Source: Neoconidiobolus thromboides FSU 785 (lineage: Eukaryota; Fungi; Entomophthoromycota). Taken from it: a stretch of 62,272 nt of DNA. A model generated the notes under the pieces. The model ran no database searches, was not told the DNA's origin, and saw only the letters and a program-made list of their open reading frames with translations. Position 1 is the first letter of the stretch. The number at the start of each line of letters is the position of its first letter. Of this stretch, positions 5,058 to 60,107 are shown piece after piece. The DNA lies in the NCBI GenBank assembly GCA_025603075.1, contig MU626380.1:1-62272 (forward strand), read 5' to 3'. Position numbers and translations under genes: made by a program.

Positions 5058-5155
5058 GGGGATGTATTTTTTTATTTAAGAATTTTACCAACAATCTTTC
5101 CACTCGAATAGCGCTTAAAAACCGGAAAAATAATGAAATCAAAAAAAATATCCCC
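5058..5155 (+). mobile_element. MITE family A copy 1
   Basis: GGGGATG...TATCCCC, 98 bp, ATAT direct repeat on both sides. Confidence 0.85.
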
Positions 5156-5509
5156 ATATAGTAGATTATTGTCTCTTGGATTTAAAAGAAGACTTTATTG
5201 TTATTTGTAATTATTGATAAGTACGTTTTAAGTTCGCCTAACTGCTATATAATACAAATATGATCAATAGATTGATTATCATTACTAAATGTTTAGTCAA
5301 GTTTGCTCAAAGATTTAAAGCAAAGTTTCTATAAGTAATGGTAATAATAGATCTGATAATCTGAATAAAAAAAATTATTATTTTCTGTATGGACCCCAAT
5401 AAACTGATTTCCAACTACTAGTATCCTCTATAAAGATTAGTAATAGATTAATATCATCTCTAATTACTAGTTTATAACAAAAAGTGTGTTGCTGCTTCTA
5501 AATATATAT

Positions 5510-5607
5510 ACAGATGTTTTTTTGGCTTCATTACTTTTTCCATCTTTTAAGCGCTATTTAAGTAAAAAAATTGTTAGTAAAACTCTTAAATACAAAAGTA
5601 TATCCCC
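5510..5607 (-). mobile_element. MITE family A copy 2
   Basis: Reverse-orientation match to the family consensus, 98 bp, ATAT on both sides, one TIR decayed. Confidence 0.8.
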
Positions 5608-5965
5608 ATATCGCCATTAAATAATAAAAGAATATTGAATTGGACTTGACTTAATTTAAGTTCATTATTATATCAAGAAAGCACTTTCCAGCTTATACAC
5701 TAAAGGCATATCATTTCTGTGATTATTTCACTATAATATAGTATAAAGCAATGTAGACAACTGATCAACTATTACAAAATTAATTTCAGTCAATAAATAA
5801 ATTCAAATCAATATAATTGATTATATACCATAGTAACTAAAAGTATGGGATTATATAGCTAAAAATTAGACTATATAACTTCATCTCATTTATAGATACA
5901 TAAAAAGCTTATCAATATGAATAGTTGTTTTTTAGAATATTTATCATTCTTTTGAAAAAAATTTT

Positions 5966-6060
5966 GGGGATGTATTCTTGCTTAAGAATTTTATTAACAA
6001 TCTTTCCACTTAAATAGCGCCTAAAAAATGGAAAAATAATAAAACTAAAAAAACATCCTT
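5966..6060 (+). mobile_element. MITE family A copy 3
   Basis: GGGGATG...CATCCTT, flanks TTTT/ATTT. Confidence 0.8.
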
Positions 6061-6643
6061 ATTTGTTGTTTTTAACAGTAATAAAATATTAGTTTTAAAA
6101 AAATGAATATTTTATATTTGATATCATTATTGATTCGGCAACCATAATAGTTAAGCTAAAATAGTTTCAAAATCCCATAGCATTTATTAATCAAAATATG
6201 CTACTTATAATTTAATTATACTTATACAGTAAGTCCATCTAAAAAATACAACACGGCTTAATTTTAATATTCAAAGACTAACTCCAATCTCAATAATATA
6301 AAATTTTACCAACTTAATGAATGATTTCTGAGAATTCTAAATTCAATATTTTTTGCAAGTAACTCAAAATAAGCTGTAACACATTTTGAATAAAGTTATA
6401 ATATACTGTCTAATAAGCTAAAAAATCAGTAAGTTAAAGTTCACTTCAATTGTATTAATTTATTTCATATCCTCTAGTTCTCTTAATAGGATTTATTGCT
6501 CTTCATATTTAATATTTTATATAATCCCATTATTAATTTAATAATGACAGAATGCTTTGATTTTATTGGAGATTTATCATAAACAAAAAATGGATAATGA
6601 ACTCACAATTAAAAGGTTAAGTTAACCTTTTAATACAAAAAAG

Positions 6644-8272
6644 ATGAAAAAGCAAGCCAAACAACTTCTACAGAAAAGCAAAAAAACCCAAGACTCCACC
6701 TATAAAGTATTAATCAATAGTCTACTACCTTCTTTACATTTAAACTCAACAAATGATGCTGAATTAAAACAAAAAAAGGAGAGCTATTTTAATTTGATCA
6801 ACGGATTCCTACCTGCCATTAATTTAACAAATAATACGGATATTAGTAAAACAAGTGCCAAAAATAAAGACCCAGTAAGTTTAATGAAACAATATTATAA
6901 GCTAGAGAATATGTATAAAGAGGAAAAACAAAACATTGATCACCCACTTAAAGGCACTCAGAATTATTTAAATGCCATAGAACATAACACCAAGATTTTA
7001 ACAAATACTCAAGTTACCCAGAAACTAGGTACTTTAGATAGTTTCATTACTTTTATTGATTGTGAATTACAGGAACACCAGGCGATTATTAGTCAGGCCT
7101 TAAAGCAGCATAGTATTTCATGGGACAGTGATGAGGTACTATTTAATTTGTATTTAAGTATTAAGATGCCACAACTATTAAGAAACAATGAGCATGAGTT
7201 TTTTAAACAGTTATTTGATACATTTTTGAAATTAAAGTATAATTCAAATTTGGCCATTTCGTTAAACAGATATCAATCTTTGCCAATAAATATTTTATTT
7301 TTAAATCGGTTCAATGCAAAGAAACAGATAGGACCGAGTATTTTATTGTTCTTAAGAATGAAGCATAAGTCTTATTTTAACCATAATAACAGACTTATGT
7401 TAATTAAAAATGAAAAAGCGTTAATTGAAAAGCTTCTCGTGATTTTAAATGAACAAAAGATCGCATCTGGTAAACACACCCTCTTTACCTATTCCCTTGG
7501 TACCTTTCGTTTACTATTAAATTGGAACCAAAAACAATTGTCAAATTTATTTTTCAACAAATATATCTTACCCTTTATGAAAGTGACTTCAGACAAAAAG
7601 GTAGTTAATTGCTTGGCTGATATTATTAAATATTATAATGAACAGCAGCTTAGCTTGGAGCAAGCAGAACATCTGACAACTATGGCATCTATCTTACCGA
7701 TTAATAATGAAACAGAGGTGCTGCTTCAAAGAACAGTGAGTCAATTGATAGATATGGATTATTTAGAGCCTATCGTTAAATTATATAATAAATCAATTAG
7801 CTTACATAATAACTACAATATTGTATACCTACAACAAAACCCAAGTCAGATTGCAATGTACCATCAATTGTTTTCATATTTCATTCAACGAAGTAACTCC
7901 AACGAAGCTTATACCATTTTGGTGCAATTACACCAACTTGATCAAATCAAATCAAAGGATTTAGATACTCTTTGGCTCTTATTTACCCAATTAATTTTAA
8001 CAAAATCTAAGCATTTAGCTACCAAAACTTTATCAATTATTCAACAATTATATCCTGATAAATTATGGGAGTATCATTCTTTAACTTTAGGCAACATCAA
8101 TCCAAATTTATTTGTATTGTATTATAATTTAATTAACAATATTAAGTATGAAATAAATCAGACTAATTTCAAGACTTTCATAAAAGAACAGGAGAATAAA
8201 GGAGATACCTTACAGTCAAAACAATTTGATCATTATTTTAAATCCATTGAATTTAGCCTAGTAAACAATTAA
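6644..8272 (+). CDS. Hypothetical 542-aa intronless protein, probably alpha-helical
   Basis: A 1.6-kb uninterrupted ATG-to-TAA ORF in very AT-rich DNA. I recognise no motif. Confidence 0.7.
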   Translation: MKKQAKQLLQKSKKTQDSTYKVLINSLLPSLHLNSTNDAELKQKKESYFNLINGFLPAINLTNNTDISKTSAKNKDPVSLMKQYYKLENMYKEEKQNIDHPLKGTQNYLNAIEHNTKILTNTQVTQKLGTLDSFITFIDCELQEHQAIISQALKQHSISWDSDEVLFNLYLSIKMPQLLRNNEHEFFKQLFDTFLKLKYNSNLAISLNRYQSLPINILFLNRFNAKKQIGPSILLFLRMKHKSYFNHNNRLMLIKNEKALIEKLLVILNEQKIASGKHTLFTYSLGTFRLLLNWNQKQLSNLFFNKYILPFMKVTSDKKVVNCLADIIKYYNEQQLSLEQAEHLTTMASILPINNETEVLLQRTVSQLIDMDYLEPIVKLYNKSISLHNNYNIVYLQQNPSQIAMYHQLFSYFIQRSNSNEAYTILVQLHQLDQIKSKDLDTLWLLFTQLILTKSKHLATKTLSIIQQLYPDKLWEYHSLTLGNINPNLFVLYYNLINNIKYEINQTNFKTFIKEQENKGDTLQSKQFDHYFKSIEFSLVNN

Positions 8273-8428
8273 GTGTATATTTATAACCTTATCTTTAATA
8301 AATTTTGTTCTTTTTTAGCATTATACTTTAAACTAGTCAAATTTGCATTATGTTTATTAATAATTTTTATTGTTTTTTCAAATTATAAATACTAAATCTA
8401 TATTTCATGTCCAAAACCATTAAAAAAT

Positions 8429-58800: not shown

Positions 58801-59113
58801 ATTCCACTGCTATGGAGTTGGGACGAGTGATTAAGAAATGACTAATTTATAAAAATTAAATTATAAAAATAGTTAATTAACAATTATTAATATAGCATAA
58901 ATGTTCTATAAAAATAGACTAAAAACCAATATTAACTTACCATAATTGAGGTAAAAAAAATATAGTCTCATTATTTGGAAACTCTTTTAATCGATTACAT
59001 AAATAATGTTGAATACCAATATTCTCTGGATAACGATGTAAATAAGATACAGCAAACCAAGGGTTAAAAAATTCACTATTAAATAAACGTAATAATAAGG
59101 AATGACTGGACAT
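55879..59113 (-). CDS. PIK1: Phosphatidylinositol 4-kinase III beta (8 exons)
   Basis: LLRLFNSEFF...FLPQLC, LPADICIPLW, AERVPYLI, VKTGADLRQE, DRHNGNIL, HIDFGF, FELAPFK and RLYDTFQY. Confidence 0.95.
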
Positions 59114-59477
59114 GAATTGTGATGTTATATTTGTGTTAATTATTCTCTTTCCTTTATATTTCTTCTTTTTGTATTGATATTTAGTTTTAAAACTACTGCA
59201 ATCGTACGTTGGTATTATTAAATAAAAGTTCAAAACAAAATCAATGCTTTGAATTCAATTTGATTTGCTTACTTAAATTCAATTATGATTGATGGTTTTT
59301 TTAAAATTAACACATTTAAAGTTGTTTATTTGGTTAAATAAAATAATTCTAAAATAAATTCAATTTTATAAAGAGTGGTATTAATTGATAATTAACTAAT
59401 TATTAACAATAAAAGTGATTTATTATTGGAACTTTTTATCACTGATTGAATAACTGATAGATTATTTAGATAGTTAT

Positions 59478-59529
59478 TTAATAATAATAATAATAATAAT
59501 AATAATAATAATAATAATAATAATAATAA
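59478..59529. repeat. (AAT)n microsatellite adjoining MITE copy 15
   Basis: Seen directly. Similar (AAT)n tracts occur in coding regions (poly-Asn) and at about 35385-35420. Confidence 0.9.
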
Positions 59530-59533
59530 CATT

Positions 59534-59631
59534 GAGGATGTTTTTTTGGCTTTATTACTTTTTCCATTTTTTAAGCGCTATTTGAGCAGAAAATTTGTTA
59601 GTAGAAATTTTAAGCATAAAAGTACATCCTT
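59534..59631 (-). mobile_element. MITE family A copy 15
   Basis: GAGGATG...CATCCTT, no clean TSD. Confidence 0.8.
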
Positions 59632-60008
59632 ATTATTATTGTTTAAAATTATATTAGTTTTTATTACATGAAAATTTGAAATTCAATTTTATATATTAGA
59701 AGGAAATAATTATTTTCTAAATACTTTCTTTTTTTCAACCAATCAGAATTTATTAAGTTAATGTGATTGGACCACATAAAACTGCTATAGAGATGTCTTA
59801 AACATTTTGTTCCTTTTCCAAAAATAAAACTTTAAATCTTACCAATTTCACCAGAATAAAAAAACATCCCCCATATTAACTTCAAAAACCAAATACAGAA
59901 TATTCAGAAAGAACCTACTAGAGTTAAAACTAACTCAATATAAAAATAGAATTTTAACATAATAAATTTTAATAAAATAAAGTTTTAATGTAAACTTTTC
60001 TAGGAAAT

Positions 60009-60107
60009 GGGGATGTATTTTTTGATTTAAGAATTTTGCTAATAAATTTTCCGCTCAAATAGGGGTCAAAAAATGGAAAAAGTGATGAGACTAAAAAAAA
60101 CATCCTC
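60009..60107 (+). mobile_element. MITE family A copy 16
   Basis: GGGGATG...CATCCTC, no clean TSD. Confidence 0.82.

Follow-up and report, generated by a model that had tools for sequence, protein, structure and literature searches.

A 98-bp repeat family in the fungus Neoconidiobolus thromboides, probably a miniature derivative of a Sola2-type DNA transposon

The contig MU626380.1 of Neoconidiobolus thromboides FSU 785 (Entomophthoromycotina), analysed here over its complete length of 62,272 bp (the window), carries a dense family of short repeats. It is very probable (about 0.9) that these repeats are ~98-bp, internally deleted, non-coding transposable elements of the miniature inverted-repeat type (MITEs) derived from a Sola2-type DNA transposon of N. 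thromboides, and I infer that a Sola2 transposase moved them. The MITE adds a new and well-supported fungal case to a known class of mobile DNA; what is new in detail is an empty site, a 10-bp palindromic target and an estimate of the copy number. Few DNA transposon superfamilies are reported from fungi as rarely as Sola, and here a Sola2 lineage would have given rise to ~10^4 MITE copies, or ~3% of the genome.

The repeat family and its copies

The repeats were initially noticed in a first-pass annotation made from the bare sequence, and the fungal host that it proposed was borne out by the identity of the contig. The SNF1-type kinase encoded in the window shows 100% identity to a protein held at NCBI for strain FSU 785. 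The window has a G+C content of ~25%. A mitochondrial or bacterial origin was ruled out, as the proteins are of the fungal nuclear type and no match to tRNA, rRNA or other Rfam families was found across the window. The 23-nt head of the first-pass consensus matches the window at eight places with at most three mismatches, while no match is expected in shuffled sequence. A profile was seeded from these head matches and iterated, and an nhmmer search of the window with this profile returned exactly 18 strong copies (E values from 1e-15 to 1e-25) spanning positions 5058-60107, with ten on the plus strand and eight on the minus strand. The number, places and orientations of the copies are those called before (Table 1), and the earlier consensus was recovered except for four positions. 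Beyond the 18 strong copies, the window contains two decayed copies and one solo end.

The consensus of the MITE is 99 nt long, and the window copies range from 92 to 118 bp. The ends are inverted (GGGGATGT...ACATCCCC), with terminal repeats of ~15 bp reading GGGGATGT(A/T)TTTTTT; the head GGGGATGTaTTTTTTT can be compared with the reverse complement of the tail, GGGGATGTtTTTTTTG. A single strand of the MITE folds only via pairing of these ends (z = -2.6 for DNA and -0.9 for RNA), and nothing else notable was found in its single-strand structure. No open frame and no Rfam or tRNA match was found in the copies. Each feature that marks a MITE is present: a short non-coding sequence, inverted ends, a duplication of fixed length, and a high copy number relative to the partner. 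A short interspersed nuclear element (SINE) was considered and rejected, because there is no tRNA or Rfam match, the ends are inverted, and the duplication is fixed at 4 bp. A longer composite element made of convergent MITE pairs, which lie 385-655 bp apart, was also dropped, because the sequences between the pairs are unrelated.

Is the density of the family the same elsewhere in the genome? A lineage-specific F-box-like protein encoded in the window has six paralogues on other contigs, and five of these were fetched with 10-kb flanks. The five contig pieces of the same genome (L003-L007, 100 kb in total) contain 37 further copies, one per 2.7 kb. In total, 55 MITE copies were sampled in 162 kb on six contigs, and with no coding capacity in any of them, the description of the family as a tiny, high-copy, non-autonomous element holds. 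In contigs of metagenomes scanned with a 28-nt degenerate core pattern of the MITE, no match was found.

Target-site duplication and target preference

In the window, 12 of the 16 scorable copies have identical 4-bp flanks. In the orientation of the element, these are ATAT in nine copies and ATTT in three (34129, 43463 and 44053), exactly as tallied before. By chance, 4-mers at this distance from each other would match in 1.3% of cases in the contig, and when the right flanks were shuffled among the window copies, at least 12 matches were obtained with P = 1e-4. A left ATTT predicts a right ATTT among the window copies (Fisher P = 0.007). For the six contigs together, the boundaries were taken from an automatic alignment with the consensus, and several low scores are one-base boundary slips. 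With these boundaries, perfect 4-bp flanks were found in 25 of 53 copies (ATAT in 19, ATTT in 4, AAAT in 1 and AAAC in 1), and 13 further copies match at three of the four positions.

Since ATAT is its own reverse complement, most copies cannot separate a target duplication from a model in which no target is duplicated and the flanking ATAT belongs to a longer, palindromic terminal repeat. The non-palindromic flanks, however, are direct and never inverted, with counts of 3 versus 0 in the window and 6 versus 0 over all contigs. A direct comparison is offered by two copies of the putative partner transposon, on L003 and L004, which hold different MITE insertions. Because each copy has private insertions, the other copy serves as its empty site. 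The filled site in L004 reads ...AATCTCCTGC-ATAT-(99-nt MITE)-ATAT-GCTGAATCATG..., an exact 4-bp duplication, while the empty site in L003 reads ...AATCTCCTGC-ATAT-GCTGAATCATG... (near the junction CTCCTGC-ATAT-GCTGAATC). A second site agrees with this: opposite the MITE at L003 1197-1294, L004 has one ATAT only, and a 3-nt indel is close by. At a third site, L003 2547-2643, the homology stops and no empty-site comparison is available. The 4-bp duplication is proven directly by the empty and filled pair, and the flanks are true target duplications, as had been claimed. The single ATAT at the empty site refutes the palindromic-repeat model, which is left with practically no chance of being right.

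The same evidence bears on the superfamily. Movement of the MITE by Tc1/mariner (with a TA duplication and the ends T-GGGG...CCCC-A), or by Ginger or Academ (3-5 bp), might be entertained, since ATAT flanks by themselves fit TA plus one extra base of the inverted repeat, and another contig (L005) has a gene for a pogo/Tc5-type protein (PF03221). Nevertheless, the direct flanks ATTT/ATTT, AAAT/AAAT and AAAC/AAAC need four bases rather than TA, exactly ATAT is duplicated relative to the empty site, and a sequence match links the MITE tail to the terminus of the Sola2 element described below. Another superfamily is therefore highly improbable, and the misfit of Tc1/mariner noted in the first-pass annotation stands.

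ATAT makes up 9 of the 12 perfect window flanks versus 19% of the AWWT sites of the contig (P = 4e-5). Outside the duplication, 32 of 38 copies have A at -7, and 26 of 38 have T at +7. Thus, the preferred target is a 10-bp palindrome, A-N-N-ATAT-N-N-T. In the proposed mechanism, a Sola2 DDD transposase supplied in trans would bind the ~15-bp inverted repeats, excise the MITE and reinsert it at a staggered 4-bp cut, preferably at ATAT within this palindrome, and gap repair would then double the four target bases. Taken together, the palindromic target and the empty and filled pairs describe Sola2 integration cleanly and could guide a transposition assay.

A probable Sola2-type partner transposon

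A Sola-type partner with a DDD transposase had been predicted for the MITE, and decayed genes of this kind with five colinear motif blocks were found on L003 and L004. The transposase remnants lie at ~355-2546 of L003 and ~17216-19405 of L004 and are ~90% identical in DNA. Both include an unannotated open frame on the minus strand (~967-2565 of L003 and ~17793-19405 of L004), with 79% protein identity between the two. The translations carry ILDFKKN, WADTxNHFRS and HHGKSIVDGHF, which pair with LMDFKEN, FWSDGAKHFKS and YHGKSDVDRHF of Sola2_DFa-2/Sola2_PPa-1. In order, the blocks of the remnants are TFFKYI...DLCNTCAQY, CIMILDFKKNMKIG, YFDYLPEILNHDSAY, INIWADTENHFRSQEFL and FFAEHHGKSIVDGHFGNLS, and those of Sola2_DFa-2/Sola2_PPa-1, in supplement 3 of PMC3627910, are STFYKFV...DTCPYCHLY, VIVLMDFKENIALG, HFDVFSDVLNHCSSY, IFFWSDGAKHFKSAEIL and FSAQYHGKSDVDRHFADLS. 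The five blocks, which include three catalytic-aspartate motifs, are colinear with those of both dictyostelid elements, with similar spacing.

An exhaustive search with one transposase piece returned 755 relatives, of which 214 have an E value <=1e-10. The aligned full-length relatives (660-840 aa) keep DFK.N, W.D.G.HFR and HGK..D.HF, and these conserved motifs are the predicted catalytic triad of three aspartates (DDD). The named relatives, one from N. thromboides and one from Furculomyces boomerangus, are all labelled 'hypothetical protein'. A relative from F. boomerangus, a kickxellomycete (PVU96560.1), is 39% identical to the Sola2-like transposase. In Pfam, neither the transposase pieces nor the full-length relatives gave a match above threshold, and only a weak DUF7869 hit was seen; this agrees with the reported absence of Pfam similarity for Sola transposases (PMC5751038).

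Both transposon copies end in ATAT-GGGGTTGTCTGAATTAGTTTCATTATTT(C/T)ATCCAATTTTT and lie at different genomic sites. An ungapped comparison of the terminus, (C)ATAT-GGGGTTGTCTGAATTAGTTTCATTATTTCATCCAATTTTT, with the reverse-complemented MITE tail gives 29 matches in 40 positions. Its score of 20 compares with 9.0 +/- 1.6 in 2000 shuffles in which the 8-nt core was kept fixed, and none of the shuffles reached it (z ~7). No comparable match was found between the MITE head and the transposon terminus. The AT-rich (AWWT) 4-bp duplication that characterizes Sola2 is also that of the MITE, and the same 162 kb hold two transposase remnants versus 55 MITE copies. In the first-pass annotation, AWWT was taken as typical of Sola1. 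This is correct in that the 4-bp AWWT duplication has been called a hallmark of Sola1 (PMC3845634), but AWWT is reported for Sola2 too, and the group found here is Sola2.

Several points weigh against the derivation of the MITE from a Sola2 element. The link to Sola2 is a motif-by-motif reading of published sequences rather than a computed alignment or tree. Both transposase copies are interrupted by insertions and stops and are dead, the L004 copy has N for the third aspartate, and no transposase lies within the window. The head end of the transposon was not located in the sampled DNA, so that only the tail side is matched. A few flanks fall outside AWWT (AAAC, ACGT/ACAT and possibly AATG), and the MITE copies are only 77-89% identical to the local consensus.

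Comparison with known elements

The defining features of Sola elements are a DDD transposase and duplications of 4 bp, and the superfamily is said to have been defined by Bao et al. in 2009. According to Bao & Jurka 2013 (PMC3627910), dictyostelid Sola2 elements have an AWWT 4-bp duplication and inverted ends of 12-22 bp. Like these elements (DFa-1/2/3 of Dictyostelium fasciculatum and PPa-1/4/5 of Polysphondylium pallidum), the N. thromboides elements have 4-bp duplications of ATAT, AAAT or ATTT, short inverted ends starting with G (~15 bp here), and the colinear motifs CxxC, (L/M)DFK(E/K)N, LNH(C/D)S, W(S/A)D...HF(K/R)S and HGKS..D.HF. In contrast to the dictyostelid elements, they reside in a fungal host, their terminal sequence is unrelated (GGGGATGT here versus GGAATATTT there), and no Fanzor gene was seen. 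The dictyostelid elements are 10-15 kb in length with few copies, while the dominant form here is the 98-bp MITE. The extended target A-N-N-ATAT-N-N-T is without mention for dictyostelid Sola2 in the sections of Bao & Jurka 2013 consulted.

The Sola1 MITEs of insects (Sola1_NA of Bombyx mori and Rhodnius prolixus; PMC3845634) are likewise non-autonomous, with an AWWT duplication and G-initial repeats, but they are 250-700 bp in length, have ~30-bp repeats, number tens to hundreds of copies and have a Sola1 partner. The Stowaway- and Tourist-type MITEs of plants and fungi resemble the N. thromboides MITE in size, lack of coding sequence, high copy number and preference for gene-proximal AT-rich DNA. 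They differ in having TA or TWA duplications and in depending on Tc1/mariner or PIF transposases, which belong to unrelated superfamilies.

Among 1,730 fungal genomes, Sola1 and Sola3 were found essentially only in Rhizophagus and Sola2 once, in Aspergillus flavus, and horizontal transfer has been suggested as the origin of fungal Sola elements (PMC5751038). The genome of N. thromboides is described as compact and otherwise repeat-poor, with 13.5% repeats (PMC11105155). Neither Sola nor MITEs are mentioned in a comparative study of entomophthoralean genomes that includes N. thromboides, and a literature search for MITEs of Conidiobolus found nothing specific. Since a relative of the transposase is present in Furculomyces, another zoopagomycete, the Sola superfamily is possibly older and more widely distributed among early-diverging fungi than has been assumed, and Sola2 itself may have a wider distribution in Zoopagomycota.

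Location relative to genes

All copies had been described as intergenic. It was found that none of the 55 copies lies inside a called gene range, while 42% of L003-L007 is genic. The window copies are outside open frames of at least 80 codons, except that copy 14589 overlaps an unannotated 82-codon frame (14459-14704, minus strand), which is probably non-coding. An apparent exception to the extragenic location is the NCBI model of an amidase gene (2193-5543), which spans two MITE copies. The model starts at an ATG inside copy 5510 (5535-5543, minus strand; ATGGAAAAA-GTAATG). However, the amidase RNA contigs stop near 4140-4300 and the 5' extension of the model is unsupported. The MITE has probably misled the annotation at the 5' end of this model. 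Since at least one public gene model starts inside a copy, the MITE family should be masked before gene prediction in N. thromboides.

The copy density is ~0.6 per kb of intergenic DNA. It is alike in divergent, tandem and convergent spacers (0.36-0.82 per kb), and no preference for 5' over 3' spacers was found beyond what spacer length gives. The accumulation between genes likely results from the AT-rich target together with selection against genic insertions. It might be asked whether the host has also co-opted the family for gene regulation or as a boundary element, acting in promoters and 3' regions. Such a role would account for the strict intergenic location and the high density, some copies lie ~50-100 nt from coding ends, and one copy has persisted from a time preceding a gene duplication. 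On the other hand, a host role does not agree with the lack of preference between 5' and 3' spacers, with the free decay of old copies, or with internal positions that are no more conserved than the ends, and an AT-rich target plus purifying selection suffices. A host role is thus unlikely.

An intron-like cassette

Positions 7-54 of the MITE consensus form a 48-nt GT...TACTAAC...AG cassette (for example, window 34135-34182). Is the MITE an introner-like unit whose cassette is spliced from genic copies, creating or mimicking introns? Introners are reportedly introns derived from DNA transposons, for example in Micromonas and Aureococcus (a finding attributed to Huff et al. in 2016). Like introners, the MITE is short and has inverted ends and splice-site-like signals. 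The cassette has the size of host introns, which are 44-54 nt here (of the four SNF1 introns, two measure 48 nt), and contains the branch-site-like TACTAAC; its removal leaves 54 nt, in frame. RNA runs contain many MITE-bearing contigs, and MITE sequence is abundant in them. In contrast to introners, which lie inside genes and are spliced, the MITE is non-genic: no copy was found in a called gene range, despite a genic share of 42% in the sampled DNA. Moreover, two RNA contigs over the MITE interior retain the cassette unspliced, and no 48-nt skip was seen among the joints listed. An introner-like nature is therefore very unlikely.

There is likewise only a slim chance that the cassette is functional and that copies in transcribed DNA are partly spliced. 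If this were true, the cassette would be a pre-adapted source of new introns, or of introns in untranslated regions, in a zygomycete fungus. The internal ATG followed by GTAATG may be a seed for new first exons. In the window, no case of cassette splicing or of such a first exon was found, and the sole gene model that uses the MITE ATG has no RNA backing.

Age, activity and abundance

The copies diverge from the consensus by 21% at G/C sites and by 10.5% at A/T sites. Private changes are found at only 2.9% of positions, and most differences are common to several copies. Thus, most of the variation reflects subfamilies. At the private rate, 79% of the duplications are expected to be intact, versus 75% observed. 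Two amidase paralogues (window 1-983 and 3159-4137) lie in tandem and are 78% identical in coding DNA. The decayed MITE at ~1668-1765, upstream of the first paralogue, aligns with the copy at 5510-5607 upstream of the second. Since copy 5510 has a counterpart at the other paralogue, the family was active before the amidase duplication. No empty sites for copies 5058 and 5966 were obtained from this duplication, because the two sides align too poorly and the insertion falls on the duplication boundary.

Isolates were compared over a 6-kb stretch using DNA contigs from two runs, X2 and X3, that carry other organism labels; these contigs differ from the window at 13 listed positions (X2) and 47 (X3). 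The suggested empty-site polymorphism between isolates was not seen: all three copies tested (5058-6060) are present in both X2 and X3. In the DNA runs, 1500-2000 contigs pile on these three copies, and the summed word depth there is hundreds to >1000x the single-copy level, a value that is not a copy number. Scaling 55 copies per 162 kb to 25-29 Mb of contigs gives roughly 8,000-10,000 copies, or ~3% of the genome, which accords with the thousands of copies thought possible at first. The dense, well-defined insertions are usable as strain-typing markers.

Individual copies and other repeats

Table 1. Positions of MITE copies and related repeats (window coordinates unless L003 or L004 is given; flanks in left/right order)
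Feature	Position	Strand	Flanks	Remarks
MITE copy	5058..5155	+	ATAT/ATAT	nhmmer E 1e-23; in DNA contigs of two other isolates
MITE copy	5510..5607	-	ATAT/ATAT	NCBI gene model start ATG inside; older than amidase duplication
MITE copy	5966..6060	+	TTTT/ATTT	3/4 match
MITE copy	14589..14686	+	ATAT/ATAT	right ATAT common to next copy (14691)
MITE copy	14691..14785	+	ATAT/ATAT	inserted at ATAT adjoining copy 14589
MITE copy	16370..16487	+	AAAT/ATAT	internal tandem triplication of 12-mer AACAATTTTATT
MITE copy	16929..17026	-	ATAT/ATAT	
MITE copy	25462..25552	-		without the four terminal G; abuts copy 25554 head to head
MITE copy	25554..25645	+		head-to-head partner of copy 25462
MITE copy	34129..34224	+	ATTT/ATTT	non-palindromic, direct
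MITE copy	34673..34769	-	ATAT/ATAT	
MITE copy	43463..43558	+	ATTT/ATTT	non-palindromic, direct
MITE copy	43750..43847	-	ATAT/ATAT	
MITE copy	44053..44144	-	ATTT/ATTT	in element orientation (AAAT on + strand)
MITE copy	44710..44802	-	ATAT/ATAT	
MITE copy	50973..51074	+	ATAT/ATAT	head G-run grown to 10 G
MITE copy	59534..59631	-	ambiguous	mutated head (AAGG); AATA/AATG under alternative boundary
MITE copy	60009..60107	+	AAAT/AATG	perfect AATG/AATG if head is three G
Decayed MITE copy	10356..10435	-		relaxed nhmmer, E 5e-4; 73% identical to consensus
Very decayed MITE copy	~1668..1765	-		aligns with copy 5510-5607 in duplicated amidase upstream region
Solo terminal repeat GGGGATGTTTTTTT	59858..59871	-		preceded by ATAT(G); unrelated sequence after
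~450-bp repeat copies	L003 1720-2183, 7873-8321, 17538-17984; L004 7822-8288, 16500-16948			

Two independent head-to-head pairs of MITEs were found, at 25462-25645 of the window and 20534-20707 of L003, and both lack 6-10 nt where the heads meet. An intact meeting point would read CATCCCC-ATAT-GGGGATG, a perfect palindrome, and the pairs fit a model in which a second MITE entered the ATAT flanking a copy already in place and part of the palindrome was then deleted. The copies at 59534-59631 and 60009-60107 face each other with their heads 379 bp apart and have a tail and flank, CATCCTCAATGTTA, in common. On other contigs, the motif ATGTTA is again found behind the tail of several MITE copies. 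A second solo GGGGATGTTTTTTT repeat lies at L003 16233 (minus strand), with ATAT before it and non-MITE sequence after it. The two solo terminal repeats (window 59871 and L003 16233) may be termini of further derivatives of the same transposon.

I also found a second non-autonomous repeat family of ~450 bp, with the ends GTGTGAAAT... and the 4-bp flank TATT. One of its copies lies inside the Sola2 remnant of L003, for which L004 is the empty site. L005 contains, at 3844-5701, a called 618-aa gene with a pogo/Tc5-type helix-turn-helix domain (PF03221), which may be a domesticated or autonomous Tc1/pogo transposase. Long AAT/ATT microsatellites are present at 26650-32450, 33300, 35370 and 59480 of the window and encode poly-asparagine runs in several proteins.

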